From Podarcis tiliguerta (taxonomy: Eukaryota), in assembly GCA_965153285.1 (NCBI GenBank), contig OZ229115.1: DNA of 64,000 nt; one strand, written 5' to 3'. The number at the start of each line of letters is the position of its first letter. The first letter of the stretch is position 1. Made by a program: the position numbers and the translations under genes. Positions 5,626 to 40,500 of this stretch are shown piece by piece. The notes beneath the pieces were generated by a model. The model did no database searches. It saw only the letters and a list, made by a program, of their open reading frames with translations, and was not told the DNA's origin.

Positions 5626-6307
5626 GGGTTATCAGCATACTCATCCACTATCAGCAGCCTTGGATCAGAAAAGGTTAAGTTGAGAATGGAAAATGACTCC
5701 TCCATCGCTTGAGCATTCATATTGGTGTAAAAGCAGGTTTCTGAGTTCAACTTCCAATCTTGATATATGCCATTTAATTGTCTGATAGCTGGATAGGGAC
5801 TTAGTGTACTCAGAACCATCCCTGTATTGATGTACCTTCAAACCATCACTAACCTCAGTTTCTTTGCTGATAGGTCTTATCTGTGGGGCTACAGTCAGAA
5901 TTTCTGTCTCCACTATCCTGACCAGTGTACCAGTTATGCCATTCAAATCCAAAACTTCCTTTTCCAGTGTGTTAATTCTGCTAAAGATTCCCTTTGCTGT
6001 TTGTCTAGACAGGAGACATTGGTCGCGTAAAAGTTCCCATAGTGAATAAGTTTCAGTCTGTGTTGTGGCTGAGTGTATCACACCAAGATTGCTATTACAC
6101 CTAGCTGAGGTTTCATTATATGGAAGAAGATGAGATTGCCTTGGAGCATATCTATCAGTGCCTAACATGTCCAGTTAGCTAAGCTTTCATTGGCCAGTTA
6201 GCTAAGCTTTCATTAGAGGAATATGTAGCAAAACCTCTCACTTTGGTTAAGGCTTTTCCAGGCCCATTACTTGCACTCTCACAATGTAAAGGACCAGGCT
6301 TGTCCAT

Positions 6308-6812
6308 ATTGTTGTTGTTGTTTAGTCGTTTAGTCGTGTCTGACTCTTCGTGACCCCGTGTACCAGAGTACCCCAGGCACTCCTGTCTTCCACTGCCTCC
6401 CGCAGTTTGGTCAAACTCATGCTGGTAGCTTTGAGAACACTGTCCAATCATCTCCTCCTCTGTTGTCCCCTTCTCCTCGTGCCCTCCAACATCAGGGTCT
6501 TTTCCAGGGAGTCTTCTCTTCTCATGAGGTGGCCAAAGTATTGGAGCCTCAGCTTCAGGATCTGTCCTTTCAGTGAGCACTCAGGGCTGATTTCCTTAAG
6601 AATGGATAGGTTTGATCTTCTTGCAGTCCTCTTGAGTCTCCTCCAGCACCATAATTCAAAAGCATCAATTCTTCGGCGATCAGCCTTCTTTAAGGTCCAG
6701 CTCTCACTTCCATACATCACTACTGGGAAAACCATGGCTTTAACTATATGGACCTTTGTTGGCAAGGTGATGTCTCTGCTTTTTAAGATGCTGTCTAGGT
6801 TTGTCATTGTTT
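6308..6812 (-). mobile_element. BovB (RTE-clade LINE) 3' fragment
   Basis: ORF 6448..6852 contains NLDSILKSRDITLPTKVHIVKAMVFPVVMYGSESWT..DAFELWCWRR..LKLRLQYFGHLMRREDSLEKTLML, the typical BovB ORF C-terminus. (CAA)n tail at 6308-6320. Confidence 0.95.
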
Positions 6813-7087
6813 TTACCTCTGCCTCCCTTGCCGAGTCACAATAGCCCAGCATAGATTTTTGGACTAAATTTGGAAATGGAGTTCTGAAGTACTGCAGGTC
6901 TGTGCTCTTGTAATAACCATGTTAAGAACTGTTAAATGTGCTGAGTATCCTTTGGTCGATATGGTCTTCTAAGTGTTTCTTTTCAGTTAAAAACACTGAG
7001 CCAAAACAGCTGCTCTTCCAGCTCCTGTCCTCCAATGAAAATATATGGCTTTTAAGCCCACATAGAAGTAAAACAGATAAAACAGAT

Positions 7088-16587: not shown

Positions 16588-17783
16588 TCATGTACTTTCA
16601 AAATCTGAGATAGGCGAGGATGATGGGAACACAACATTTTCAATAACAGGCTGCTCTTCTAGCTCAAAAAGGGGTGGCAAAACAGCCCCATCTGGCTCTT
16701 CCTCTGGATTGGGAGGAGTTGGAAACATAACCCCTTCTTGGTCAGGATTCTCAAAAGTGAGAGAAGGCAACAGGGGAGAATCATCTTTTTCAGCATTCTC
16801 CAAAGTAGGATAAGGCAACAGGGGAGAATCATCTTTTTCAGCATTCTCCAAAGTGGGAGAAGGCAACAGGGGAGAGTGGTCTTTTTCAGCATTCTCCAAA
16901 GTGGAAGAAGGCAAGAAGGGAGAGTCATCTTTTTCTGCATTCTCCAAAGTGATAGAAGGCAACAGGGGAGAGTCATCTTTTGGGGAGTCCGGAACAGCAA
17001 GGACTGTGACTTCTTTTTCCTGCTTGGTCTCAACATCGCCTTTAGGAAAAGAATCCTGTTTCTTCTTCCTTCTACGGCGGAAGTACCAGAAGCAGCTGCA
17101 CAGAGACAGGGAATCTTTATTACCATAAGGCATGTGGCTCTTAGTAGGCACCCCTCCCATACAGCTCTGGTTGCCCAGAACCCCATGATCAAAATACAGG
17201 GAGGGACACATATAAGGAATATGGAAGCCAGATTCATAGCAAAGTGGTAACATCCCCCTTGCCCAAGAACTCTGTTGGGTTAGGGCAGGGGTAGGCAACC
17301 TAAGGCCCGTGGGCCAGATGCGGCCCAATCGCCTTCTCATGGACGGTCTGGGAATCAGCGTGTTTTTACACGAGTAGAATGTGTCCTTTTATTTTCAATG
17401 CATATCTGGGTTATTAGTGGGGCCTGCCTGGTGTTTTTATATGAGTGGAATGTGTGCTTTTATTTAAAATGCATCTCTGAGTTATTTGTGGGGCATAGGA
17501 ATTCATTCATTATTATTTTTTTCAAAATATAGTCCGGCCAACCACATGGTCTGAGGGACGGTGATCCGGCCCATGGCTGAAAAAGGTTGCTGACCCCTGG
17601 GTTAGGGTATGCTGGTTGGGGTATCTTGGCCAGGATCAGGTGGTGGTTACTGAAAAGTGATAATAATCAAATTGTAGAAGGCATGTGGGGAAACCATGCA
17701 AGGGAGCTGTATTCAGAGGAAGGGCAAAGGTGGAATGAAAGCAATACCTGTTTGGTGCACTCTAGTCCCAGAAGCCAGGGAAA

Positions 17784-17829
<46 letters not shown>

Positions 17830-20800
17830 TATTATTTTTACCCCGCCCATCTAGCTGGGTTTCCCCAGCCACTCTGGGCGGCTTCCAACAAAACACTAAA
17901 ATACAATAACCAATTAAATATTAAAAGCTTCCCTAAACAGGGCTTCAGATGTCTTCTAAAAGTTTGGTAGTTGCACTGCACTGGTGGTGCAGATATATGA
18001 TCCCGTAGTGGAGGCATTCCCTGGGCACCCCCACCCCCAATTATCTGTGATAACTGGTTGCACAGCCACTGTCATTTCTCAGGATCTCTTGGGACCCTGC
18101 CCTCACTTAATGACCAGCCACACATCTCTTTGGCCCACCAAATTTTACAGAAGTGGGCTTAGACAGGAAAGAAGAAAACCCAGAACTCACAGCACAATGA
18201 TACAGAGGCAAGTAAGCAGCAGGACGAGAAAGATCACCAACAGAGCAGGAAATCCATGTGTTGGAGGGACTGCGTGGAAAGAGACACAGATCACTCAAGA
18301 GTGCCAGTTCTCCTCAGCACCCAGAGCCAAGCTGCCTATCCAGCAGTAGCACCTGCCTCTATTAAGTTAAACAGCAGGTGAGCTTAAGTATCACAGTGGA
18401 AAGAAAGGCCAAAGGGAAATAGGCAGCCAGTATAAGCAAACACTGTTTGGACCAAATTCACACATGCACAGAACTGTTCCCTCACTAGATGCTCATATAT
18501 ATGGTTGCAGTCAAGGAGCTCTGTTTCTTAGGTACCTAAGAACACAAGAAAAGCCTTGCTAGATCAGGCCAAAGGACCACCTCCTTCAGCATCTTGTTCT
18601 CACTGAGGTCTGCAGGAAGCCTGCAAGCAGGACATGAGTGCAACAGTAATAACTTGTAATTCTGAGTAACTTCAGAGGCACACTGCCGCCAATAGTGGAG
18701 GTGGAACATAGCCATCTGAAGTTAAATCTGTCTTTGGATTTAACATACAGGTTTGAGGGAGCATTAAGTATACAGAGCATCACCTTAGGGAAGAGGGATA
18801 ATTAACACGATCACAGGAGGTGAAATTTAACTCTCCTGTTGTGAGTCTTGTGGTAAGAATTTACTTCTACATCACTCTGTCTGTTACCAAGATGAGGGGC
18901 CACCTTTTAAATAAAATACAGAACCAAGGAAACTAATTCAAGTCCAGCATCCAGGACTGAAGTAAATCCTCCTCTGGAGCTAGTATTTCTATTGGGAAGA
19001 AATTCCCCATTGCAGCAAATCTTCCCAACTTCAGAGGAGGGATTTTTCTCAGGACTGTGGCAAGGAAAGAGTTAAAATCCCCTCCCCCTTCACCCCCTAC
19101 AATCATGATACTTCTCAGCCCCAGCCACACAGTTGATGCTATGTTGTGTCTAGCTTGACTCTCAGTATGCTAAGTCCAAGAAACAGTGCTGGAAAATCCA
19201 GAGAGGTCTCTCAGGAAGCCCTTCCTCATGTCACCCACCTGATACATACCTTCTGGGCTCATGCATTCCGCAGCTGTTCTGGCAGCAGGGTGCAAGGTTG
19301 ACCCGTTGTGGTAGCACTGAATGCACACAGTTGTCCCATAGCGCAGGCTATATGTTCCGTATGGGCAGGGAACGCAATTTCCAGATGCAGCCACACTATA
19401 TGTTCCAGGAGGGCACGCAGCTGTCAAGCAAAATGGCAGATAAAGGCATGGAGGGGGGAGCGAAAGGAGCAGAGCCTGAAATACAGACAGCACACAGGTT
19501 TCATTCCTCCATCAGCTAAGCTGGAGGGGTGGGGAGGAATTAGGGAGAGAGGGATTTCAAGCTGGCCGCATACCGTGTGAGCCCTACCCAAGGGGCATCC
19601 TTTTTCAATCATCCTCCTCAAAGGAGTTGTGGAGAGGGTGTCTCTTCCTGGAATCAAGGGAGTCATGCTTAGCGCAATGTGCTAAACAGGTGGACAAAAT
19701 AGCTCTGACTGAATGGAATTAAAGATCGGATCCAAGGGCTGTGTACACACCATGCATTTAAAGCATGTGACTTCCCCCCCCCCAAAAAAAATTGGGAACT
19801 GTAGTTTATTAAGGGTGCTGAGAAATATAGCTCCACGAGGGGTGAAAACTAAAGTGTACACAGCCCAAGGGCACCTGGCAGAGCTACAGTGAAACTCTAG
19901 AACAGTCTTTCCCAACCTTGGGTCTCCAGCTGTTTTCAGACGACAGTTCCCATCATCCCTGACCAGTGGTCTTGCTAGCTAGGGATGATGGGAGTTGTAG
20001 TCCAAAAACAGCTGGAGACCCAAGGTTGGGAAACACTGCTCTAGAGGAAGGGAAGGTAGAGAGAAGAGAGCCATTACAAACCCAGTGCTCTCCAGATGTT
20101 TTGGGGCTGGTGGGAGTTGTGTTCCAAAACATCTGGAAGGCACTGGGTTTGCAAAGGCTGGGGTGACAGCTAAGAACAAATGTGGCGAGAGGCTTCCCAG
20201 TGACGTGAACAAACACTGCAGCCTATGGGACCAGAGGCAGCGTCTGAGGAGGGATGAGGCAGCAGCTCATGGATCACCTGCTCCACTCACTACAGCAGTC
20301 GGGACAGCGTGCCTGTAGCTCCGAGGTCTGTCCATAACCTTCCAGGCATGTTCCACCCTCCAGGAAGTTGACAAAGGTGTTGACGAAGGAGGTGCGGGAG
20401 GTGGGCACCTCTCCCAAGGGGAAACGTTTGTTGTTCTCCATGAATATGGTTATTGCTTCCTCGGCCTGTAGGGAGATGCATAGGGTGGTTCAAGAGTGGG
20501 GGAAGGAAGACTGGGAGGTCTGCTTTTTGTTATTGATCTGTTTTTCTGAAAAAGGAAGGTAAACAGGATTGCAGGGAAAACTGAGAAGGATAAGAATCTG
20601 ATGACAGGGTCATCACAAGAGTGAGTGAACAAAATGTGGCAATTCCATAGTAAATGCCTAGAATGCAAGCATCCATCCTTTCTTTGAAATATGCATAACC
20701 ATGGGGTTCTTGCTTTTATTGCCTCAAAGTAAATAGCCCCAGCGATTCCATGTGCAGCAATGCACATTAGCCTTGTTCCAGAACGTATGTAGGTACAAAA

Positions 20801-23800
20801 CCCCAGCAAACTTATTTCCTGGTAGGGGAGAGATGAAGTTTGGTGACGTACCTGCTGCAGATTGCTCAAGACAGCTCCATTATAACAATCAAATTCCAGT
20901 GCATCAGCCTTGGGGGAGCAGAACTTATCCCAGCCCTTCCCAAAAGGAGATACTAGAAAACAATGACAAATATGTTACGGTCCCTTTGCCGATAGGCTCG
21001 CTCTTCCATCAGTGCACACAGAGTCCAAACCCTCATTCCAGGATATGGCAAAATAGATCCAATATAATGCTTGCCTGAATGCAGTTAAGTAAATTATGTT
21101 AATTCAACTTAGCGCAACCCTCCAGATCATGATACATATCCATTGCCACCCTTGCTGCTTAAGAAATGTTCCTCCGGCAATCCAAGGGAATGTACCTTTA
21201 CCCAAAATCTGTCTGTTCTCAGCAAAGACACACACTGAGGCTACACTTACTTCTGGTGTTTTCAGTAGGCAGTCCTAGCTGGTGAAATCCTGCCTTTCTG
21301 CACGAGCCTCTCCTGCTCCAAACTTCACTTCCTCCCCAAACTGTGACTGAACCCAGCCAACCTGAGTTCCTCTGCCATCCTCTAGAAACACCCTGAATTT
21401 CTTGGCTCTGACCTTCAAGCTCTACCTGGAAGTTGAACTCATCCAAGGGTTTCTCCATGGTGGGGAAGCAGCTGATGGCGCCAAGCAGAAGTTCACAGTG
21501 GAGGTGGTGCACCACCTCGCTCAGGTGCTCTCGCAGGGTCTTCAGGAACCCATGCGTCAATTCCTCATCGCAAGAGTTGCACTGAAAAAGGAGTAGGACG
21601 TGCAGCTCTGCACGTATGTGGTAGCCTGGGGAAAGAGGCAGAGGAAGGGGAATCTGGAAGGCAACTTCTCCTACAAAAACAGGAGCTCAAAAGACAGCAA
21701 AAGTCACATCTTCCACATCATGTCCACTATGAAGAAGTTCAAGAAGACGGAAAGAAATTGTAAACACCTAAGAAAGACTGTGGATCCTCAGGAGAACAGA
21801 GAGAAACTACCTATGTTTGGCCACAGTGTCTGGCCACAGGCCAAAACTTCTCCCACATTTCTCCCAATATATGTCCGTCCATCCCCCACCACTAGCTTCC
21901 TCCTGGTTCCAGCCAATCACCCATCTAGTCAAATAGTTCAGTCCCCTTTGTTTCACTATCCTTCAAGACATCTGGAATCCACTCACCCACCACTGTGTGA
22001 TAGAAAGTTTTAGTATGGAGCTGGCCATCCGTGGTGTAGGAGACTGTGCAGACATACAGTCCACTGTCATCAGTATGAAAATCATGCAGAGTCAGGGAAG
22101 CATCACCACTGAGGGGATGGGTTCCTGAAAGTAGAGGGCAGAATCAGCCTAAGAAGAACAATGTTCTGTTACAACCAGCTTAGGCACCAATACTGAGGTC
22201 AAGAGAAACCCCCGGTCCTTTAATACTTCTATAGCTTCATGTGGCTCTTGGCTCATTGGTACATGGATGCATCGAGAGAGTCTAATTATTTTCTGCTGCC
22301 CTTATGCCATGAATGCCCATACAAAATACCTTTCTTGAATCCCGACATTCTACACCATATTTTCTTATTATAGGAACCATGCACTGGGTAGCTGAGATTG
22401 GCAGGTACAGTTAGTCAATATTTTGTGACATGCTGATACTATTTTACAACCAAGTTTTGGGTTTGGAAAAGCAAGTTGTCTCGCAGCTTGCTTCAGTTAT
22501 AACTTTTAAGTAACAGGAACCTTTAAAAGCTGAGCTCTGAGTCTATTTCACTTCCAGTAGTTCTGATGTTTTTGCCAATATGCCTGTTGTGAAGAATAAT
22601 CTGTTGAGCTCTCCAGACTTTAATTTGGGCAGGCAATTTCAGGCCAACTTGGTTTCACATCTGGGAAGCTTAACAGATGCATCAATGTGTTTGCGAGTTA
22701 CCTTTTCATGCATCTTCAGGCCTCACCCCAAGCAGTGATTGAACTGGTATAAGAAGTAAAGATGGGCTCCTTAATGAAATCCACAGGGCCCAATACCCAC
22801 TCACTCCAATTTTAGCCACATAATGGCCTCTCTGTAGCATTAGGAGGAAGAGTGACATAACATTGGCTCTTGCCCAAGGCACAAGGACACAGAGGGCATA
22901 GGCAAGCCTAAACTTATTCTCAACATAAAATGCTTGGGAAATATTATCTTGGGTGCTAAAGTTCAAATCAGTCTGAGGAGCAAAAAAATCTCTGTTGCTG
23001 ATCATTCTAGAAAAAACATTGGCAGCCCTGGGACACCAACAGGTGCCTTTTCCCAAGTAATCCAAACTCTTCTTTCCCTCACACATCTGTCCCTGACATC
23101 TACTGAAAGATCCTAGAGTCCCAAGCAATAAGGCCTAACCTTCATTTTCCAGGCTCCAGTTGTAGGTGGGATTCATACCAATCACAACATCCATCTCTGA
23201 AGACTTGCAGGGGATAGTAAATTCCTTGGCACCAATGTGGACAAAGATGGTGTCTGAAAAAATAGGCAGGTATTGTGGTTAGCATGTCTGACTAGAACCA
23301 GGAAGACCCGGGTTCAAATCCTCCCTTGGCCATGAAGCTCCCTAGATGACCTTGAGCCAGCCACTACCTCTCAGCCTAATCTAGCTCATAGGGTTGCTGT
23401 GAAGATAAATGGAAGGTGGAAGAGCTGTGTACTCTGGCTTGGGCTTTCTGGAGGAAAGACAGGGTTCAAATTTAGTAAAAAATGAATAAATCAGAAGAAT
23501 CAATTTGGCATTGGTGACAGGGCAATGGGAAAACAAGGTTCTTGGTTGGGCTTTGTGTTAATGGGCACAAATCATCTAATGATCATCTATCGCTTGGCTA
23601 GCTCAGGTGGCCAGATTGAAGTGCCAAGGCCATGGATTCAAGGCACAGATCAGATGGCCACTGAAGATGGATGAAACGAGGCTGCAGTGATGATGTCCCC
23701 ATTTATTGCTTGTTTATTTTACTTAGTGCAGTGTCAGCTAAATGGAACTGATCTTCATTACAGTCTCACCCAGCTCTCCAGCTGTCTTTCTAACACGTGC

Positions 23801-24928
23801 CAGTCCTGCAGGAGTTCCATTGTCAGACAAGTCAAGGTGAAGTCCACAGCCTGAAAAGGAGCAAAGACCTCCTTCTGTAAAGTATCATACTGTAAAGTAT
23901 CATTACAGACTTAACTGCTGTATCTGTGTATTCATAAAGCAATGGTTCCCAGCTTCATGGTACATTGTGCAGTCTGAAACTCACCCCGGAGCTCCCATGT
24001 TTTGACCAGGGAGAGTCGGAGGTTAAATTGGGATATACTGGCAAATCCCCAGATGACACAGTATTTCCACAGCAGCAAGTAAAACTGATATATATCTGCC
24101 ATTGCTGACTTTGTAGAAACCACTTATTTCTCAGCCTCAGTGTTCCTCACCTGGAAGGTAGGCAGCAATCTTAACACCATACCCAAAAGGAAGCCCTATT
24201 AAATTCAACAGGACTTCCTTCTGAGTACACATGGGATTGCATTATTGGCTGCCACTGGCCAGTTTTAGAGTTCTGTGTTAAAATCCCTAAACTGCAGTAA
24301 CTCAGATGTTGAATTATTTATTATATATTTATTTTTTTGATGTAGTTATTGTTACAATACATTTTCATTTGTGTATGTAGTTTATTCCAGTGTATGGTTT
24401 GTGGGGTGGAACAGGTAATTCTTCCTGCTGAACCCCCCTTTTCCATGGGGTGCCAATCCTGTTCCCACCGCCACCTTTGTACAATGTGGCTCTGTACTGT
24501 CCACCCACCCCAGCCAGGATCTTGCTCCTGACACCATCTGGTAGACCTCAGGATGACAGCAATATACAAAGCCGGTTTCAAAAGTCTCAAATTGAACTTC
24601 ACTCCAACTCTCTCTAGCTCCATGCAAGGAGCCATTTCGGTCCAGAATATTGTGTTTTTGAGCTGCATGCGAGGCGATTCCATCCGTTTTTGTGGACAGA
24701 TTCGAATGTTAATTGAATTAATAAACTCGTATAACAGGCAGGCGTTTAGGAGACCGTGCCCTTGGCTCTTTCCACAAGCAACTGCAGCTCTGATGTGCTA
24801 CCACCACATCCTCGAGGAGACACCCGGCTGCAGCCGAGCCCCTCGATAGCACCCTTCTCCGTACCGGGCCCATCGCACAGCAATAGGACTAGGATCCCCA
24901 AAGCGACGCCAGCCGACCAGCAAGACAT
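16588..24928 (-). CDS. ZPBP/sp38-family-like type I membrane protein, 10 coding exons, ~547 aa (557 aa if the in-frame upstream ATG at 24958 is used)
   Basis: Exons (-): 24928-24865, 23850-23770, 23253-23140, 22124-21987, 21625-21413, 20952-20852, 20465-20291, 19420-19250, 18269-18191, 17095-16588. All introns are GT-AG, all phases are compatible, and the 1644 nt read open to TGA. Signal peptide MSCWSAGVALGILVLLLCDGPGCG. Ig motifs FTIPC..YNWS..LTLHDFHTDDSGLYVC. ZPBP2-like blocks VSPFGKGW, NLQQAEEAI, CLEGYG..CPDCCTACPPGTYS. TM GFPALLVIFLVLLLTCLCIIVLCFWYF followed by RRRRKKK. Confidence 0.85.
16741..16980 (-). repeat. Coding minisatellite, 5 x 48 bp (16-aa unit KDDSPLLPSxTLENAE) in the cytoplasmic tail of the ZPBP-like gene
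   Basis: AAGGCAACAGGGGAGA-like words recur with a period of 48 bp; the translated units are visible in ORF 16588..17340. Confidence 0.92.
17286..17599. mobile_element. hAT-type MITE with perfect 8-bp TSD
   Basis: TIRs CAGGGGTAGGCAACC...GGTTGCTGACCCCTG; TSD GGTTAGGG at 17278-17285 and 17600-17607. Confidence 0.92.
17785..17970 (-). mobile_element. (AAT)n microsatellite abutting a LINE (L2-like) 3' end
   Basis: About 14 AAT units at 17785-17828, followed by ccccgcccatct..ccccagccactctgggcggctt..ttcagatgtcttctaaa, a repeat I recognise as common in lacertids; family call tentative. Confidence 0.6.
18537..18716 (-). mobile_element. Old LINE (CR1-like) 3' fragment
   Basis: Second diverged copy of the 5426-5625 element, in intron 8 of the ZPBP-like gene. 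Confidence 0.5.
19903..20038. mobile_element. Palindromic hAT-type MITE
   Basis: Near-perfect fold-back (cagtctttcccaaccttgggtctccagctgtttt...aaaacagctggagacccaaggttgggaaacactg) with near-identical 8-bp flanks CTCTAGAA/CTCTAGAG. Related decayed copies lie near 11665-11790, 34365-34490, 36385-36500 and 40670-40815. Confidence 0.85.
23272..23490 (+). mobile_element. tRNA-derived SINE (MIR/CORE-like)
   Basis: gtggttag..B-box GGTTCAAATCC..tgaccttgagc..ctctcagcct..gggttgctgtgaagataaa, A-rich end. Confidence 0.65.
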
Positions 24929-24959
24929 GTAGCCAGACTTAAGGGCGATCTGTCCCATT

Positions 24960-25400
24960 CTAGAGCCCCCCGTGAGAACGGAGAGGTCTCCGGAATCCCT
25001 GCAAGAGCCATGCGGTTGCTACGCAACCTAGAGCTCCTTCGTGACGTCGAGGCGTTCTAGAACCCATCTCCGCCACCGTCCCAGCGGAAGACGCCGCTAA
25101 GGTTGCTTACGCCTCTGATTATTTCTGGTCCTCGGCTGCCCCCGTCCGCGCGCTTTTTACGTCATCCGATTGCGACAACCTGGAAGCAACGGTTTTTCGC
25201 AAACCAGGCGGCGTTGTGTTCGAGGTGAGGACTACCGGAAGGTAACGAGCAGCGTTGTGTCGCCTTAGAAGCCAGGAACGGGTGACTAGAGGTGAGGGGC
25301 TAAAGAGAATAGGTGCTGCGCGGGAGGCAATTGACACCCTTGGGCGTGTTTTCTCCTCCTAGGTTCTTAGCTTTTTATTGTTTTCTCTTTTCAGCGCCAT
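24960..25400. promoter_or_regulatory. CpG-rich bidirectional promoter, ZPBP-like (-) / SNAPC2 (+)
   Basis: CpG-dense; the two ATGs are 471 bp apart. X-box-like palindrome GGTTGCTACGCAACC 25014-25028; CRE-like TGACGTCG 25042-25049 and TTACGTCA 25157-25164; ETS core CCGGAAG 25235-25241. Confidence 0.75.
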
Positions 25401-27973
25401 GAAGCCGCCCTCCAGGCAGCGTTCAGCCCCTGCTCGCTACAGGACGGCCCCCACGAGCCAGGCTTGGACGGACCCAGAAAAGCGACGCCTTCTTCGGGCC
25501 TTGAGAGCTCACGGCCAGGGTCCGCTGCGGCCCGAGCTGTTGAAGAAGTACCTGCCTTCGAGGGATGAAGAAGAGGTGGGTGGCCACGTGGTGGAGGGCA
25601 GGATTCGAACTTGGCCGGGCTGTGAGCTTCCTAACAACCCCACGAGTTGGCGGACTGATGGCCAGCATGCAGGGTTTGGAGACGAGGACTCCATCTCTGG
25701 TCAGCCACGAGAGCTAGGTGGCCTTGGCAGATAAATCGTAAGGGACGACTGGGGAGGATGAATTGGGAGAGACTCCTTTTTTAATCCTTCTACACATTCA
25801 TACTGGCAAATCCTAGTTAAAGGGGAGTAATTGCAAACTTTCTGCCTTGAAGAAATACTCCATTTTTATGTTTTCAGAAAGTAGAATACTGTCTCCCAAA
25901 ACATTCCATGTATGTCCCCTAAGTTGTGCTGCTCTTGCAGATCATGGCATTTGTGGAGCACCTGAAAGAGCGTGTGGCAAAGGAAGCAGTCAAGGAACAA
26001 TATCAGTATCGCCAGCGTAAACAGAAGGATGCTCCTATTCCAGCACCTATTGAGGTATGAGAGTTTTAAAAGTGTAGGTAATGTGATATGGCACAACATA
26101 AGCTAAGGGCTATTCACACAACTGACACTTCCTTTTTTTGTTTTTTTAGATATGGACAGAGTTAGCTGAGAAATTGACAGGTCCCCTTGAGGATGCTATT
26201 GCAACTGCTTTTTCCCAGGTAACCTTTTCCATGATCTTAATAAGATAGGTATTGTTCTTGGTGTAGTAATTTAAGATATCTGTATGTCTCCATCTGACAA
26301 AATGTCTCTGAAATACATGGCTCTGTCCTGGTTCTTTTGGTTCTTTTATAACTTTTCAGACAGATTTAATGCTGGGAAATGTATTTGGTTTACTAGAGAA
26401 TCCCTGACTGCTTGGCATACAAAGTCCATACTTGATTGTGACTTTTTCTCTACTCATTAGGTTTGGACAATTGCATCTACTGAGCCACTCACCTTGCTCC
26501 ATTCCGTGCCTCCAAAGTCAGTGGTGATAAAGAATTCTCAATGTTCATCCCAAAATCTTCATTGTGAGAGTAGGAAATCCAACGAAGAATCTCATGAACC
26601 AACTGTATCATCAGATGTAGAGGAAACAGCCCCTGCAGAAAACAGTAGGTTCCATGTGGACTTTGAAAAGATCTACAAGTACCTTTCTGTGATCTCACGT
26701 GGCTGTAAGGCACCTGAACTCCCACCAGGTGGTAAGTCGGTGTTTGTCTTGGACCAAGATGAATTTAAATAACAGGCAGCTACTGGAAGAAATGTTTCTG
26801 CACTGGAATGTGACTCCAGGTAACCAAGACATCTACTACAGCATGCCTACTATATTCTTGGTGCCAGGCAAAAACATTTCTCCTTATGGAAGCTGCCTTA
26901 TTGAGTTTTATTTGCAATCATTCCATCCCTTCCTTTTTATTCTGTTGCTTTTTCTGTATTGTGCCATTTTTTCATCTGCTGTGGAGTTCTATTTCAGCTG
27001 AAGGGCTGGACACTAAATCTTAAAAATGCTTCCCATAAATGGAGCATCCCCTAGAACTGGAAACACTATGTGTCCTGTCAAAAACTGTACTCCTTCTGCC
27101 AAAACTTCCAACATATTTAGTGCTACTAAAAGCAACAACCACCTTGCTGGGCATAGTTGGGTAACCTTTGAGGTTACTGTTGTGGATGATGGGTGGGATT
27201 TGGGGGACTAAGGAAAACATTTCAGAAGGGAATTGTTTGTTTCTCCCCACTCCCCAGTGAAAATATGAGTGGCCCATGAGCGTGGAGACAGGGAGAGTTT
27301 TCCTAGGTGAGAGGAAGCAGCAACCTGTCATATAATGTAAAACAGATAAAAGGTTCTCATCAGATTTCCAGTCTTTAAAATAAAATTTCTTATATAGAAA
27401 GTTATCCTTAACCTCTAAGACGTAATTTTTAAAAATCTAAAATAGCTTAGCTGTTAATGTGAGAAAATTTACTCCTTCATTTGTTACACATGTTGGAGGC
27501 AGGGTGAAGTTTCAGAATCTGTAACTGGAGAGCAGGAGATAAAAAACCTATGTTTCTGCCAAAGTGAGTGTAGCCACTCTCCTCATACATTTTGCTTGCT
27601 TTCTGCAGAGTCAGCTGTGGTCCTAGATTTGCTACTGTCACTGCCAGAAGAGCTGGGCTTTCTAGACTTCAAGAAGCTGAAGAGTCACATGCACAAATGT
27701 TACACAGAGTTGAACACCCACTACACAGGTGAAAGAAGCAGAATGAAAGAGGGCAACCAGCCTGTAAGCAATAATGGGGAGCTATTTCCACATGTGCAGC
27801 CAGCTACTACTGGCTTACCACAACAGGAGGAGAGTAGTAGTTCTCCTACCACCTCCAAAGATGATGCAAGTTCTGCCTCTGCCATGGACTGGAAGACTCT
27901 GGGTATCTGCCCTTTGAATCCATTCTTGTTTCCTTTAGCTATCCTTGCACGTAAAGAAGAAAGCTTTGACTGA
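25399..27973 (+). CDS. SNAPC2: snRNA-activating protein complex subunit 2 (SNAP45), 5 coding exons, ~331 aa
   Basis: Exons 25399-25575, 25941-26054, 26150-26218, 26461-26731, 27609-27973 (GT-AG, 996 nt open). MKPPSRQRSAPARY...[43 protein letters not shown]...VDFEKIYKYLS...ESAVVLDLL...GICPLNPFLFPL match motifs I recall from SNAPC2. Confidence 0.93.
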
Positions 27974-32500: not shown

Positions 32501-35500
32501 CCATTCATTTTACAATTACTCTGCTTGCCTGCTCCTGTAAGATCCAGCCAGCATTTGCCTGTAACACTTTATGCTGTCATATTCTGCATCAAGAGGACTC
32601 CAGTATCCTAGGGTTGGGGACCCCTTTTGTGAGACCCCATGGGAAAGGTAAAGAATACAGGACTGTGGTGCTAGTGTGAGAAGCAGATAACATAAAAACC
32701 TTTCCCCCCACAAAAAAAGCAAAATTCCATTGCCTACTAAAGAACCGCCTCTCGCTTGGGCAATGCTCACCTGGGCACCTTGCTTAAGTTCAATGTTGCT
32801 GCTTACTGGACACTGTGCATCAAGAGTTTTCACCAGTACAGGGTCACTATCCGCTGCCTTGAAGGACCTTCGTTCTCCTAGAAGACAGACAAGATGTAAA
32901 AAACTTGCATCCCTCCTGCCTGATGTGTTTTGAAAGGGTTACTCCCCAATAGCTGAGCTGCATGTAGGGGGCTCTGTTTCATCCTTCCACAGCCCCAGGT
33001 GTTGTGAGCTCCAAGTATTAGGCTCTGCACACTATTCTGAAAGCATAATTCTGTAAAATTCCAGAATTCCATACAATACATATCATAACATGTTTCCCAC
33101 TTCTGCAGATATCAGCAACAGAAGAAAATATTATAAAATAAATAAATGTGTCCTTGTATTCACCTATCAAAAAGCGGTGCAAGAATATCAGGACTGGAAA
33201 ACTTAACTATTGGTGTCAGTAGGATGTATTGCCTAATTTTATAATGGTCTTGTGTTGTTTTATTCAGAAAGAAGAGGGGAAGGCCAGTTCCCAAGGGTTG
33301 GTTCCCAGCTCTTAGCTGAAAGTCTGTCTCTAAAAGGAAAGGGCTACTTGTCACAGTTGGAGTCATTGCAGCATTCTCACCAGGCAACTCATCCAGCCTT
33401 CTAGCATTTGTGAGCTCCACATCATCCTTGTGCGTACACAACCGGGTAGCCAAGATTCCATCTTTCTCCACCCGATGGGTAGCTGTTAGAGTTAGCTGTC
33501 TGGTAACCTCCTCTGTGCATCTGAATGGGGACAATTAAAATTAAGAAGACATTTGTATCTGATGAGAAACATTGAAGACCAAGAAGAACTATCAGGCTTG
33601 CTACTGCGCCCATTCAAATTACTTTCCATGAGAACATGAGGCTGTAACCAGCACCAAAACATGGAGATCAACTCTGCATCGCTAGTATATGAGCAAGGAT
33701 GCTTGCAGGTGAAGGAATACCCCAGCAAGCACAGTACCTCTAAATTCCCCATTCCTCCAAACCCAGTGTCTCCCAGCATTTCTCCATGGTTCCTCAAAGA
33801 GTACTGGACCCAAATTTCAAACAGTGCAATGAGTTTAAATGAAGAATTGGAGCAGGCCAGCCAACTTGACAGAAGCAGCTATATCAGCATTCAAATGTTT
33901 GGTGATGTCTCTCTAGACATAGGACTTCCACCCCAAGAGATTAGAATCTCCCCAGCCCATTCTGCTGGGGGACGATGGCATCTCACCTGCCCAGGCGGAC
34001 AGTATGCAGAAGAGAAATGAAGTCCCTGTCAGTCTGCCTCCGCACCTCTGTCAGCTCCATGTTCAGGTGGATACACCTGCGCCAGCTCTTTGCCTGTGAA
34101 GGAAACCCTTTGATCAAACTATAGCTCGGCCTGTGACAAGAGCATGCAGTGACAAAGAGCAACAGCAGCACACCTGGAAACAGAACCTGGGCTGCTCGGA
34201 GGATTTGCTGACAGGAGGCAGCTGCAAGAAGTCTCCACATACGATGAGTTGGATTCCTCCAAATGGGTCCTCACATTTCCTGACCGCTCTACCAAAAGAG
34301 AATGGAGACACCTTCAGGGAGCTGATTTTATTCTGGTCCAAGAGAAAAGAAATGCAATACCCTAGGCCAAGGATGGGAAGCCTGTGGCCCTCCAGATGTT
34401 GTTCTACTGCAGTTCCCATGATGCCTAGCTGTTGGTCATGCTGCTTGGGACTGATGGGAATTGTAATCCAATTGCATCTGGAAGATTCCCTGTTCCTGTT
34501 TCCCTTGCAACACTTACACATGCTCTGCATACGCTAAGACAGAGTAACAAATATAATTCAGTTCTGCTTCTCTCTGTGGCTGCAAACCCCCCTTCTAGGA
34601 CCACATTATACTTAAGGAGTCATTTTAGAACTATTGTGCATGGACAGGAGCATGGGAAACAGACAGGACTGAAGCACAGAGATGGCAATGCTGACTGGTG
34701 GCTCTGGGTGGACACTGGCCACAGCGTTCCCAAAACTAGATGTGGGACTGAAGAGAATACACGGGCAAAGCTGTGAGTGTGAGACTGTTTGCTGCAGAAT
34801 TGCATCAAGTGCCTGCTTAGGCAAAACTTTAGAACAACTATGCAGTGTTTTGTCTTCTGCCCTATTAATACCCTCCCCAAAGCCATGTACACACAGGATT
34901 AATGCAAGTGCAGCAATATCCCCCAAAAGGAAGACTCCACCCACCTAGCTACTGCCTCCAGTTTATCAAAGAAATCCCCCTCCACCATAGAGATTTCATC
35001 TATGATCAGATGGCGGCTGTTCAGCCATTGCTGCCGAATTCCGGGTCTCTGAGCCAGCTCAATGCACTGATGTAGGGAGGCCTTTCCTGACCCGATACCT
35101 ATCAAAGGAGCGGGGAAAGAGTATGTCAGCAGTAACCCATCACTAGGCTCTTTTCCGCTTCCCTCCTTTCCCAGGATCCCAGTTACCTGCAAAGGCATGG
35201 AGAGTAGTGCCACCGATCTGACATGCTGCCACCCCTGTGCTGGCTGTGGCGTAAGTGCTGTTTGGAGGCAGCGAGGCTATGATCTTTTTCAGCAGGTAGG
35301 ATTTCCCAGTCCCTACAGAGAGAGCCCTTGTATTTAGAGGCACACAATCTAAATTTCAGTTTTACAATTACTCCAGCACCATTCATACTTCCCTTCAAAG
35401 CGGAACCATTTAAATGGCAAGAGGCAGATGCAAAACTTGATCAGTTTTAGAAGTGACACCTAGATTGTAAATCAAAGTCGACTCAATGGTATCTGCCTCT

Positions 35501-37123
35501 CATAAATCTCCATCTGCCCCATGCCACTACCCCAAAAAGGAGAGACATCAGAATCACCAACTTTACATACCTTAAATCCCAGGTTTATTCAGTGGAAGGA
35601 ATGCAAGATTCCCACTATAGTAGATGAAGCCACTACAACCTTTAACCTGCAAACGCACAGACCCTCCTTGACCCTCTTCTCTCACCAGCACTGCCTGTGA
35701 AGAAAACATTCTTCCCACTCAGCACTGCATTCAACACCATTGACTGTTCCTGGGAGAGTTTTGCTCGGGAGCACATGGACCAAGTCTTCTTCACCTGCTG
35801 CTTTTCAGCCACCTGAAAAGAGCACAGAAACCTGCCTTATGCTGAGTCAGACCAGTGGCTCATCTTGTTCAGTACTGTATCCACTGACTGGGAGCAGCTT
35901 CAGACAGGGGTGTTTTTAGCCCCACCTGGAGATTATGTGGGTTGAGCCTATGACATTCTGCCTGCATAACAGAACTTAATACATTCCCCAAAAGGCAAAC
36001 TCCTCTGAATCCAAAGTGCTCATGAGAATTTTCCATCCCATCTCTCTTGATTACAGCAGCCAGAAAGGAGAATGCCTCTCTTACCCAGTGGGATAGTTCT
36101 TTGAATTTCAATTGGACCAAAGAAGCCTTACGTTCAAATAAAATAATAATTTGACCTTGCCCATACTACTACGGAAGTTCTGCTCAGGTATCCGCCAGTA
36201 AGACCAGCATGCATTGGAGAAAGGGCCTACTCTGTGGTGGTCTCAGTTATGGAACTTGCTAAGTGAGTTTCTGAAGTGCTTAAGGAGTGCATGAATCTGT
36301 CACTCTGCATAACCACAACTTCAGCATATGGGATTAGCAGGTGAGTATGTCCACTTTTCAGAAACTAGCCACCACTCTTATGCCAAGGATGGGGAACCTC
36401 CGGGTATCCTTGGACTCCAACTCCCAGCAGTCCCAGCCAGCACTGCCAGACCATGGGTGATGGGGGTTGGAGTCCAACAATACCTGGACGGCCAGAGATC
36501 CTTTTGTTATGGGCAGCTCCCGGCTAGATCATGCTTTCCGGCAGAAGCTGGCTCACCTGTTTCCCATCGATGGACTCACTTCGGATCCGCTTCCGAGACG
36601 CGCAGCGTAAGGGCTGACCTTTCCGCGGGGTGCTTGTCACGTCAGTCAGAGCCTGCCGGGCGCTCGCCTGCTGCAAGTCGCGAGTCTGCACCGGGCTCAC
36701 CGTGTCGAACGTCCGCGGTAGGCCAGCGAGAAGCCGCGTTCGCTCGGCCACAGGCTTGGTCCCCCTCTGGGCGGCTGCGTGCTTGATGCGCAGCGTGTGG
36801 ACGAAGCGGCGCAGCCGATCCGGAGGACAATTAGAGAGCAGCAGCTGCACGTGATTGTGGTTTGCACCGAGCTGCACTGAGCTCTTCCCCTCCTTCACGA
36901 AGCGTGTGAACAGCCGCACTTCACCCCGCCGCAAGGGGAAATCCTGGGGGCGCCCCGGACCGGCGGCGCTGGCCACTTGCAGAACCAGCTCCTGGAACTC
37001 GTCCCGGCCCAGTGTGACCCAAGCATCGCGGAGAAGCACACGATTCGGGGCTGCTGCAGCACCCAGGTACTCGATCGCTACAGTGCAACGAACCCGACCG
37101 TCCACTTCGGAGCCTGGTTGCAT
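29538..37123 (-). CDS. PIF1: ATP-dependent 5'-3' DNA helicase PIF1, 12 coding exons, ~640 aa
   Basis: Exons (-): 37123-36557, 35812-35686, 35312-35187, 35098-34945, 34288-34174, 34093-33987, 33520-33381, 32877-32771, 31634-31547, 31214-31069, 30557-30366, 29591-29538 (1923 nt open). Motifs: FFTGSAGTGKS (Walker A, split by an intron), [66 protein letters not shown]. Confidence 0.97.
29628..29980. mobile_element. GC-rich interspersed element (probably a non-autonomous DNA transposon) in the last PIF1 intron
   Basis: Abrupt GC/CpG-rich island ending in ..gctccgccactg; a similar terminus (cagtggcagagc) starts the GC-rich insert at 60473-60660. Confidence 0.5.
35830..35965 (-). mobile_element. 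Squam3-like SINE fragment
   Basis: Reverse-complement match to the 3' part of 38136-38312 (ctgccttatgctgagtcagacca..). Confidence 0.55.
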
Positions 37124-37129
37124 TCCGTC

Positions 37130-37535
37130 CGACTGAAAACAAGGAGGCAACGCAGAAGTCTAGACCAGCTAAAATGTCTGTATTGAAAAGACGCCGACTT
37201 CTTGCTGCCTTTCCCTTTCGCGTTGATTTCGGCAGCCACTTATTTCTCCCATGTGCCTAAATAACTCTTCCAGCCGTGCCTTCGCTTCTCCCGCAAGCGG
37301 ATTCAAACCTTTAACGGGGTCGCAGCAGCCAATCAGCGCTGCGGGAGATTTAACTCCTCGGCCAATGAAAAAGAGAAGGGGCGCGGTCAGAATCCCGGCG
37401 CAACTTTCGGCTGCGACGTTCCGCTCGGTTGCTAGGATACGAAAAGGTGGGGAAACGCCGCCCGCAACATACACGAAGGGCATTTCGGGGCGCTCCGGGC
37501 ACGTTCTAAATAGCCTCCCCCGCAGATAGCGGCAC
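37130..37535. promoter_or_regulatory. CpG-rich bidirectional promoter, PIF1 (-) / CFAP144 (+)
   Basis: CHR-like TTTGAA on the minus strand (37302-37307); CCAAT boxes at 37329 and 37362 (33 bp apart); X-box-like GTTGCTAGGATAC 37428-37440. Confidence 0.75.
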
Positions 37536-40500
37536 ATGGCAGGAGTCGCGCGGGTCCCAAAGGAACCGTTGGACCCAGTAAGCCAGAACAAGATCTTCTG
37601 TGAGACGGTCCGGAAGGAGCTACGATGCCAGCGCCTGCAGACGGAATACGCGATGAACCCCCTGATGACGGGTACGGGGGTACCGGGAGAGACTTCCCCC
37701 CTTCTCATGGGCAGACGGAGCTTCCCAGTTAGGTCTAAGGGGGTCCTCTGGCTCTTGACTCCAGCTGGCTCTAGTTTCCCTCTTTCCACGAATGAACGGT
37801 GTTTGGGTGCAAACAAAACTTGCTGCAAACTAAAACAAAGAACCCCAACCACTACCACCACCAGAGGGGTTTGTGGCACTTTAAAGAGTGTGATCCACTG
37901 GTCTGTGGTACACACACACCTATGTAAAGGAAGGAAAGTTTTAGGTTGGAAACAAGGAACAAAGGAATGCAAAAGCAGTATTTGTAGTTGAATTAGAGCT
38001 TAAAGGTATGCAGACTGACCCTCACACCAATAGCAATTTGTGTTATCACATAAAGTGCACCTTAAATGCCCAAGCTGCAATATGAGTGGTTAGATCTCCA
38101 TAGGATCAGAGCCGTTTAGAGGTGCAATAACTAAAGGGGAGGAGCTGTAGCTCAGTGCATGTGGAAGATCTCAAGTTCAGCCCTCAGCATCTCTAGGTGA
38201 GGCTGGGAGAAAATCCTGCCTGAAATCCTGGAGAGCTGTTGCCAGCTGGTGTGGACAATACTGTGTTACATGGACCAATAGTCTCACTCGGTATAAGCTT
38301 CCTATATTCCTAAACCACATTCTCAGTGCCAAACTGAATTCAGGAGGGATTCATAGAATAGAGCCATTTGTTGGAAACAACTATGCAGTTTTCTGTGTAC
38401 CTGGATTTGCAATCCTAAAACTCAATCAAGAAGACTTACGAAGAGCCATTTCATAAACACATCAAAAAAGCTTGTTACAATATCCTTTTGCCTCCACATA
38501 CTAAGGATATGTTCACATTACTGCTTTCTCCCCAATCCAGGGCACCCACTACTTTTTGAAGCTGCATTCACACGATGTTAGCCAATCCATACTGATCTTG
38601 TACTTTGACAAATACTATTGTTTGATGCATTTCCCAGCCCCCCTCCCAAATTAGCTTTAATCTGGCTGGAAAACTGAATGGGGAGTAAACAGCAATGTGA
38701 ACATTTGAGACAGCTATCTCACATGCCCAGGTGAGCATACTTATACAGATGACAGCTTCATGAATAGGAGTTGGAAGGTGGGGATTGCAGGGGCAAGGAA
38801 TCAAAAAGATCTCACATGCGGGAAGACAACCCCGCCCTGTCTCCGATGTGAACACTGCTGTGCAAATGCAGATTGAACCACAGCAGCAGGGGCAATGGCC
38901 TTGCTACATTTTAAGCCACTAACGTAAACATACACTAACAGGCCTACCCCTCTGGAAACTAACATATTACACAAATCTCTCTCCAATAGTTTTGATCCCA
39001 AGTGCCAGTCTTTTCCTCTAAAATGATGCATTGGCTTTGTAGTGTCTCCCATGCCTATCTGTGGGACCCCCAAAAGTTATGGAACAGTTGTCCCCCAAAT
39101 ATCCTAGTGGTTCTTTGAAAACCTGCATTTAAGAAAAAGGCCTAAATTCCTGCCAAAGACGGGTGGTGTGGGGAAAGAAGAATGATAAATTTCTAAGCTT
39201 TGTTAGTTTTCCTCTGCCCTTGCTTAAGGTTATTTAGTGATTAATTTGCCTTATTTTGCTTTTACCTTTAGTTTACACCATAACTCGAAAGCCTACCTCT
39301 TGGCATGATAACTTAGAAGAACCTGCAGATGGTAAGCACATGCTTTTAAACAGTTACATTTAAGTTAGTGAAACAGAGAGGAGTCATTTATGAAATGTTT
39401 TCCAGCATGAATCAAAGCAGGCAAAGTATGTAGCACCATACTGAAGTCTAAACGTCAAACTTCACTCTTTCTCCCTCTGTAAACCAAAAAGCATTATACT
39501 ATACAATCTGCAGTGAAATGTGGCAAGAGACAGCTGATAGCTCCAATTTTTGTATTTCTTGGATCTTTTATTGGATCAATTCCTTTCCATGTATGTTGGA
39601 GTGCTGAAACTTTCAAGTTAAGAAAAAAGTCACTGCCATTATGTTTTCTTCTTAATGATATATTTTTGCAAATAAATATTTAAAAGCACAAGCTTCAATA
39701 TTCAAAGCAACAAACCCCAACTTACCTAGCCACACAGTGATACTATCAAATTTGACTTCCAACTTAATATTATTTCACTAGATTAGTTCCCATTTCATCT
39801 TTTTAATTCTTTACCTTTCTAAGGGTTCTGAGAGACCTAAATGGTGCTTGTTATGTTGAAATGCCTTTATCCAGGATATTGGTTTCAGGATGGACACTGG
39901 TTTGTGGCCTTTTTGTAACTTGAATTCTTGCCAGCAAATACTGTTCTAATATAGTTAAGCCTTTTGGGACAACAATGAAGTTAACCTAAGGCCAGTGACA
40001 GCTAACCTTTTTGGAAGGGTAAAATGTAGAGCAGCCAAGAGGACATGTCTTTGGGAACTGAGATTTTCTGAAACTTCTATTAAATTATACAAAATACTGT
40101 AGTCATCTCATTTTACCAGAACAATGCAGGCCTCCTGTCTGCCTTAGAGAAGATGTGAACTTCACTGAAAATCTTTTCCAAGCTTCATTCTCCTGTCATG
40201 CATCTACAGAGCGAGAGCATGGCAGCATAGGCATCAGCATGCAGTTGCTATACTCTGTGCAGAAGAGCAGTGCCTGGAAATCTAGAATTAGGGCAAGGGT
40301 ACAAGACGTACTGGAAATACAGTGGTACCTTGGGTTAAGTACTTAATTCGTTCCGGAGGTCTGTTCTTAACCTGAAACTGTTCTTAACCTGAAGTACCAC
40401 TTTAGCTAATGGGGCCTGCTACTGCTGCCGCGCCGCTGGAGCACGATTTCTGTTCTCATCCTGAAGCAAAGTTATTAACCCGAGGTACTATTTCTGGGTT

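Follow-up and report, generated by a model that had tools for sequence, protein, structure and literature searches.

A conserved ten-exon gene of Podarcis tiliguerta predicted to encode a membrane-anchored protein of the ZPBP/Sp38 family

Does a stretch of lizard DNA encode a zona pellucida-binding protein that is held in a membrane, and, if so, is this protein ZPBP1, ZPBP2 or something else? The question is raised by the minus strand of a 64,000-nucleotide segment of contig OZ229115.1 (assembly GCA_965153285.1) from Podarcis tiliguerta, referred to below as the window, in which ten exons between positions 24958 and 16588 can be joined into one reading frame. ZPBP1 and ZPBP2 are secreted acrosomal matrix proteins; both are needed in mice for acrosome formation and sperm shape, and they are treated as a two-gene secreted family. 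The locus very probably represents an intact, conserved protein-coding gene for a type I membrane glycoprotein of the ZPBP/Sp38 family, most likely belonging to a third lineage of that family. The identity and the architecture of this ZPBP-like protein are well supported.

The ten-exon model proposed in the original prediction holds at the level of the letters. The spliced exons amount to 1644 nt and read in phase from 24928 to 16588 on the minus strand, giving 547 amino acids (aa) and a stop codon, the length that had been claimed. All nine introns start with GT and end with AG, there are no internal stops, and the codons split across the junctions specify, in order, G, D, G, G, V, none at the sixth junction, T, V and L. 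The two joins singled out for checking, 19250>18269 and 18191>17095, are located where they had been placed. A second in-frame ATG lies upstream at 24958 and is the start used by RefSeq models, adding 10 residues to give a protein of 557 aa. An alternative donor for exon 1 at 24853, which would add the residues T-E-K-G, was dropped because both the RefSeq orthologs and the original prediction use the GT at 24864. The exons are as follows.

24865..24958, minus strand: exon 1, with the start codon (ATG 24958 in RefSeq, 24928 in the original prediction) and a hydrophobic signal peptide; donor GTACGG at 24864
23770..23850, minus strand: exon 2, a linker with an N-G-T sequon, phase 1-1; low conservation in ortholog alignments A1 and A3
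23140..23253, minus strand: exon 3, first half of the immunoglobulin (Ig) domain, including the first conserved Ig Cys (C74 of the P. raffonei protein P0047)
21987..22124, minus strand: exon 4, second half of the Ig domain, with a D-S-G-x-Y-x-C motif; Pfam V-set match
21413..21625, minus strand: exon 5, opening strand, helix and following strand pair of the middle domain; a phmmer search with it reached the ortholog family, with a predicted local distance difference test score (pLDDT) of ~90 in an AlphaFold2 (AF2) model
20852..20952, minus strand: exon 6, middle domain with the conserved P-F-x-x-x-W-D-x-x-C ... C-Y; ortholog alignments and tblastn
20291..20465, minus strand: exon 7, the remaining helix and strand of the middle domain plus the first half of EGF_Sp38_C, which ends with C-P-D-C-C
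19250..19420, minus strand: exon 8, Cys-rich Ephrin_rec_like module (GCC2/GCC3-type), phase 1-1, overlapping the second half of EGF_Sp38_C
18191..18269, minus strand: exon 9, 79 nt, the whole transmembrane (TM) helix; hydropathy and AF2 helix
16588..17095, minus strand: exon 10, Cys/polybasic juxtamembrane stretch, acidic Pro-rich tail, V-F-P-S-S-S-P motif, and TGA at 16590-16588

The window exons were searched singly, and whole-protein tests were run on natural full-length orthologs, chiefly on P0047, i.e., isoform X1 of P. raffonei LOC128415914 in RefSeq (557 aa), which serves as a full-length stand-in for the window protein. When P0047 was compared with the window by tblastn, it fell into ten pieces, one on each of the ten exons. 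Eight of these pieces show 89-98% identity, and the other two (63% and 85%) overrun the exon end into the intron. This agreement with the ten exons is far beyond chance. The identities point to Podarcis or a near relative, a lacertid lizard, as the source of the window.

The original prediction had described the gene as hidden, which is contradicted by the databases: RefSeq or GenBank models are already present for lizards, snakes, turtles, alligator and birds. The closest matches are Podarcis models labelled "zona pellucida-binding protein 2-like" or "uncharacterized LOC", and the gene is annotated in Podarcis muralis, P. raffonei, P. lilfordi, Pogona, Anolis and others, mostly as ZPBP2-like or ZPBP1-like. 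A phmmer search with exon 5 against 1.84 billion representative sequences returned 13 proteins, the top two of which (P. muralis XP_028589641, a ZPBP2-like isoform X3, and P. lilfordi CAI5777382) are 100% identical to the exon; the same search also reached snakes, Pogona, alligator and a parrot. The squamate orthologs include Rhineura, Pogona, Phrynocephalus, Sceloporus, Phrynosoma, two Anolis species and Varanus, and, among snakes, Python, Pseudonaja, Vipera, Crotalus, Naja and Ophiophagus. Outside squamates, they come from six turtle genera, Alligator and the birds Numida, Pelecanoides and Nestor, so that all orthologs within reach of the homolog searches run are sauropsid. The word-indexed homolog searches (P0006, alignments A1 and A2) returned orthologs only, with no bona fide ZPBP1 or ZPBP2 among the matches, and a literature search on a third or membrane-bound ZPBP, on "ZPBP2-like" or on its LOC identifiers found nothing relevant. 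The gene is thus annotated but unstudied, a membrane-anchored variant of a known family. The labels "proline-rich protein 36-like" and "mucin-1-like" given to turtle models (P0073, P0068) are taken to reflect tail composition; P0073 comprises the TM segment and tail of the Pelodiscus ortholog and nothing more. Human PRR36 lies near SNAPC2 at 19p13.2, which makes a remote tie to the mammalian locus conceivable, the name most likely being compositional.

The assignment to the ZPBP/Sp38 family, and the order of domains given with it (Ig domain, middle Cys-containing domain, EGF/Ephrin-like Cys cluster), are borne out by the full-length orthologs. The EGF_Sp38_C model (PF20626) matches P0047 at residues 287-338 with 27.6 bits against a cut-off of 24, and all full-length orthologs scanned are above this cut-off, at 26-31 bits. 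Window exons 7 and 8, each searched alone, give no EGF_Sp38_C match because the intron splits the domain; across these two exons P0047 and the window are 93-95% identical. The Sp38 N-terminal Ig model (PF07354, cut-off 23.1 bits) is exceeded in birds and sea turtles, at 27.5-32.8 bits, with a kea fragment at 28.7. Two generic models are matched by single window exons, namely V-set by exon 4 (27.3 bits, cut-off 26) and Ephrin_rec_like (PF07699) by exon 8 (37.7 bits, cut-off 23.1; 32-40 bits in orthologs). Exon-by-exon Pfam searches gave no match for exons 3, 5, 6, 7 and 10, since single exons are too short. In the ESM Atlas, P0047 residues 30-345 fall closest to the ZPBP2 cluster (0.97, 225 of 256 features), followed by ZPBP1 (0.96), and the ten best family-assigned matches all share a family with ZPBP1/2. 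The Pfam scores of the full-length orthologs, together with the Atlas clusters, thus support placing the protein in the ZPBP/Sp38 superfamily. The Cys and motif spacing of the middle domain may also match that of human ZPBP2, a lead rather than a test.

The ectodomain was examined in ortholog alignments of 13 and 24 sequences and in an AF2 model of P0047 made from an alignment. The ectodomain is conserved, and nearly all of the 24 sequences keep the Cys residues of its Ig, middle and Cys-rich domains. The Ig pair consists of C74 (23 of 24 sequences) and C122 (all 24), and these two conserved Cys residues, together with the D-x-G-x-Y-x-C motif, mark the domain as a member of the immunoglobulin superfamily. 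The core of the signal peptide encoded by exon 1 has a mean Kyte-Doolittle hydropathy of 2.6 and is modelled as a helix (residues 14-28 of P0047). The mean pLDDT of the whole model is 60, being poor in the Cys-rich module and the tail, with an Ig beta sandwich at 59-143 (pLDDT about 74-91) and a middle domain at 149-284 (pLDDT ~90) that is predicted to carry a disulfide and to fold as beta-alpha-beta-beta-alpha-beta. The modelled elements of the middle domain, and its comparisons with known structures, are as follows.

Middle-domain elements in the AF2 model: strand (E) 149-158, helix (H) 163-182, strand 187-197, strand 206-215, helix 235-258, strand 273-284
Middle domain against ribosomal protein S6 (VIA-align): Z 9.8, root-mean-square deviation (rmsd) 3.0, 93 aligned residues
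Middle domain against the Gpr126 extracellular region, residues 375-507 (VIA-align): Z 9.5, rmsd 3.2, 104 aligned
Middle domain against the mucin 16 SEA domain (VIA-align): Z 7.9, rmsd 4.2, 113 aligned

Residues 375-507 of Gpr126 are taken by us to be its SEA domain. Foldseek matches also include the N-terminal region of alpha-dystroglycan (5llk, 1u2c), which consists of an Ig-like domain and an S6-like domain. The model thus assigns the middle domain to an S6/SEA-like ferredoxin fold, which is a fold class and not a family membership. Like the extracellular N-terminal region of alpha-dystroglycan, the modelled ectodomain has an Ig domain followed by a beta-alpha-beta-beta-alpha-beta ferredoxin-like domain. 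The likeness to the alpha-dystroglycan, Gpr126/ADGRG6 and mucin 16 SEA ectodomains is one of fold only, at 5-13% identity, and Z values against S6/SEA folds are common for so frequent a fold and allow no shared function to be read from them. Because the fold is very common, the S6/SEA likeness describes the domain and assigns no function to it. A sequence search of the copy of the Protein Data Bank (PDB) used here returned generic matches to Ig and Ephrin_rec_like domains, including 8tx1 and thyroglobulin, and no structure of a ZPBP protein.

The original prediction had also claimed a TM helix and a cytoplasmic tail beyond the usual end of a ZPBP protein; these are present in the window and conserved across sauropsids. 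The TM exon (18269-18191) has a mean Kyte-Doolittle hydropathy of 3.1 and is modelled as part of a long helix (369-404), and a TM segment is detected in 21 of the 22 ortholog models. In the ortholog alignments, the TM segment carries conserved Cys residues and is followed by a basic juxtamembrane stretch and then by a fast-evolving tail, which comprises 168 aa in the window protein. The C-terminal motif V-F-P-S-S-S-P is common to lizards, and a related motif occurs in turtles and alligator. The ZPBP/Sp38 family is described as secreted and lacking a membrane anchor, a trait from which the TM exon and tail of this protein depart. As a separate observation, the TM segment of the bird orthologs (P0066, P0067, P0069, P0012) does not have the Cys pair found in other sauropsids, and their tail is short.

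In comparison with known systems, the protein shares with ZPBP2 and ZPBP1 (sp38/IAM38; PF07354 and PF20626) a signal peptide, an Ig domain, a presumably equivalent middle Cys domain and EGF_Sp38_C in the same order. What ZPBP1/2 do not have is the TM helix, the Cys/polybasic juxtamembrane stretch and the cytoplasmic tail, which measures ~90-370 aa among orthologs. In the present protein the Cys cluster also extends to a full Ephrin_rec_like module, the gene is located in a SNAPC2/PIF1 neighbourhood, and the Sp38 Ig model is matched weakly. The exon 8 module resembles the Ephrin_rec_like (GCC2/GCC3) modules of SCUBE, ELAPOR, thyroglobulin and mastigoneme proteins; in contrast to these, the sauropsid protein has one module only, which is fused to a ZPBP-type ectodomain. 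By way of analogy, IZUMO1 and SPACA6 are likewise single-pass membrane proteins with an Ig domain, and the present protein may be sperm-exposed in a similar way. A faint Izumo-Ig Pfam match was seen in the Pogona ortholog (18.1 bits against a cut-off of 26.7). However, unlike IZUMO1 and SPACA6, the protein has no Izumo helical domain and no significant sequence relation to them.

Whether this gene is a third family member, as the original prediction held, or simply ZPBP1 or ZPBP2 under another guise, is a harder matter, and the claim is only partly shown. ZPBP1 lies beside IKZF1, and ZPBP2 on the IKZF3/ORMDL3/GSDM side. The window neighbours are SNAPC2, PIF1 and a WD40 gene, so that, on synteny, the locus corresponds to neither ZPBP1 nor ZPBP2. 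In a tree of 21 orthologs the branching order agrees with that of the species, with Lacertoidea, snakes and Iguania within squamates and turtles, alligator and birds opposite, a pattern consistent with a single-copy gene that sauropsids have from their common ancestor. The birds form a long branch in this tree, with 0.74 changes per column. A turkey transcriptome paper, citing Lin et al. 2007, states that birds have both ZPBP1 and ZPBP2 (PMC7647744). Birds also carry the TM form of the ZPBP-like gene (P0066, P0069). The combination of synteny, a species-like gene tree, the report of both genes in birds and inconsistent names suggests that the gene is probably a third ZPBP lineage rather than an ortholog of ZPBP1 or ZPBP2.

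Several results weigh against the view that the gene encodes a third, membrane-anchored member of the family. The Sp38 Ig model remains below its cut-off in squamates (16-18 bits; 17.2 for window exon 4, 16.6 for P0047); the middle domain (P0047 residues 144-286) is covered by no Pfam model, and by itself it gave no usable ESM Atlas match. Among predicted transcripts, the RefSeq X3 isoforms of P. muralis and P. raffonei (P0001, P0014) join exon 8 to exon 10 in a shifted frame and contain no TM segment, and Pogona X4 and the Varanus model (P0043, P0053) read through the exon 7 donor and end ~12 residues later. The tail motifs are not conserved outside lizards, and the claim of a third lineage is itself built on synteny, a literature statement and weak Pfam scores. 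Alternatively, the gene could simply be the sauropsid ortholog of ZPBP2 (or of ZPBP1), with a TM exon kept or gained and no third gene to account for. The automatic names ("ZPBP2-like", "ZPBP1-like", and plain "ZPBP1" or "ZPBP2" in the newest Pogona release and in two bird records) point in this direction, as does the ZPBP2 cluster being the nearest in the Atlas. However, isoforms of the single Pogona gene are named ZPBP1 and ZPBP2 alike, showing that automatic names follow best hits and not orthology, and the flanking SNAPC2 and PIF1, the report (PMC7647744) of both ZPBP1 and ZPBP2 in birds that also have the TM form, and the low Sp38 Ig scores (16-33 bits) all speak against a plain ortholog, which is very unlikely.

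A second alternative is that the protein is an unrelated Ig and Cys-rich receptor whose likeness to ZPBP either arose by convergence or goes no further than generic Ig and EGF/TNFR-like modules. In squamates the generic V-set model scores 24-27 bits, no lower than the 16-18 bits of the Sp38 model, EGF_Sp38_C overlaps the generic Ephrin_rec_like model, and the middle domain by itself has no match. Two ZPBP-specific Pfam models in the right order, both above their cut-offs in birds and sea turtles, and ten best family-assigned Atlas matches that share the ZPBP1/2 family make such a coincidence most improbable. The TM-less isoforms raise a different doubt, namely that a soluble ZPBP-like protein, made by skipping the TM exon or by ending after exon 7, is the main product and that the TM form is minor or an artefact. 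Transcripts ending before the TM exon had been named beforehand as an outcome that would refute the prediction, and the result is mixed: isoforms with the TM segment are predicted in nearly all the species found, but some RefSeq isoforms do not contain it. Against a mainly soluble product, conservation of the TM exon, its Cys residues and the polybasic stretch extends from lizards to birds (the Cys pair being absent from the bird TM), and the normal-frame C-terminal motif is conserved in lizards, turtles and alligator; such conservation would not be expected if the TM exon were unused. Without exon 9, which is 79 nt long, the tail repeat is translated in a shifted, Leu/Cys-rich frame, and this altered tail is a by-product of the repeat having several open frames. 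A mainly soluble product is thus scarcely probable, and a membrane-anchored protein of a third lineage remains the favoured interpretation.

What such a protein would do can be proposed by analogy with ZPBP1/2. A ZPBP-type binding ectodomain would be held at the cell surface or on a membrane of the secretory or acrosomal pathway, motifs in the tail may control its sorting, and the protein may help to assemble the acrosome or to make contact with the egg coat. A putative position of the ectodomain on the acrosomal or surface membrane of sperm is offered tentatively, on analogy. More doubtful still is the idea that the anchored form dates back to an early third branch of the ZPBP family, perhaps even its ancestral state, kept in sauropsids and lost in mammals, and that it serves as a receptor of the sperm membrane for the egg coat (perivitelline layer) or as a membrane tether that organises acrosomal matrix of the ZPBP1/2 type. 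If a conserved membrane-anchored third member does exist in reptiles and birds, the ZPBP ectodomain can also serve as a tethered receptor, bird and reptile fertilisation would gain a new candidate surface molecule, and the gene would help to date gains and losses in the ZPBP family. The pairing of an Ig domain with an S6/SEA-like middle domain, as in the dystroglycan N-terminus, would provide a structural hypothesis that can be used for ZPBP proteins as a whole. The gain is modest, the gene being already in databases under a ZPBP-like name.

The tail deserves a closer description. Exon 10 contains a tandem repeat.

16742..16981, minus strand: 48-bp minisatellite encoding 16-aa tail repeats with D-D-S-P-L-L; Tandem Repeats Finder (TRF), 5.0 copies, 89% matches

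The repeat motif occurs five times in the window and in P. raffonei, four times in P. muralis X2 and in P. lilfordi, and once in Rhineura. The D-D-S-P-L-L unit conforms to the acidic dileucine pattern [DE]xxxL[LI]. As a sorting signal of the whole family, this pattern was rejected: it is found 3-4 times in Podarcis proteins, 0-1 times in other lizards, and not at all in snakes, turtles, alligator and birds. Any sorting role of the dileucine repeats would therefore be lineage-specific, the pattern having multiplied only in Podarcis. The minisatellite region (16659-17250) is also open in a second minus-strand frame, as an open reading frame (ORF) of 192 aa, and in two plus-strand frames (170 and 91 aa). 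The second minus-strand frame is the one read by P0001, in which exon 9 is skipped. A trinucleotide microsatellite lies nearby in intron 9 (17713-17900) and is read as runs of I, Y or L in ORFs.

Further variation was seen among the predicted isoforms. Exon 4 is missing from P0058, and the alligator model P0057 does not include the Ephrin_rec_like segment that corresponds to window exon 8. Reading through the exon 7 donor in the window (20274-20291, minus strand) adds five residues, S-E-W-S-R. In the Pogona and Varanus models (P0043, P0053, P0059), the read-through peptide has 12 residues and is identical, although these lizards are only distantly related. This shared peptide could mean either that the start of the intron is conserved or that a short soluble isoform really exists.

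The gene stands head-to-head with SNAPC2 on the plus strand, with PIF1 farther on and a WD40 gene after it.

24959..25398, no strand: gap of about 440 bp between the upstream ATG of the ZPBP-like gene and the ATG of SNAPC2
25399-27970, plus strand: SNAPC2 (PF11035; match at 25399-25731 in the first exon with 34.6 bits, at 27596-27970 in the last exon with 93.1 bits)
33160-37150, minus strand: PIF1-like helicase gene, two exon ORFs of which match PF05970
50916-60454, plus strand: WD40 beta-propeller protein in several exon-sized ORFs; WD40 above cut-off, EML-type propeller and others below

The gap of ~440 bp is a possible shared bidirectional promoter and is noted as a candidate. The GC fraction reaches 0.506 in 24001-26000, around this gap, and peaks at 0.551 in 36001-38000, in the PIF1-like region. 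The N-terminal exon of the PIF1-like gene (36524-37147) matches the LRR1 pleckstrin-homology model PF25344 with 52.7 bits. The WD40 gene presumably resembles a cilia- or flagella-associated WD protein. At the other end of the window, long ORFs overlap on both strands at 6179-6852; the one that was scanned had no Pfam match, and the minus-strand peptide of this region is presumably similar to the tail of ORF2 of a long interspersed nuclear element (LINE) of the RTE/BovB type.

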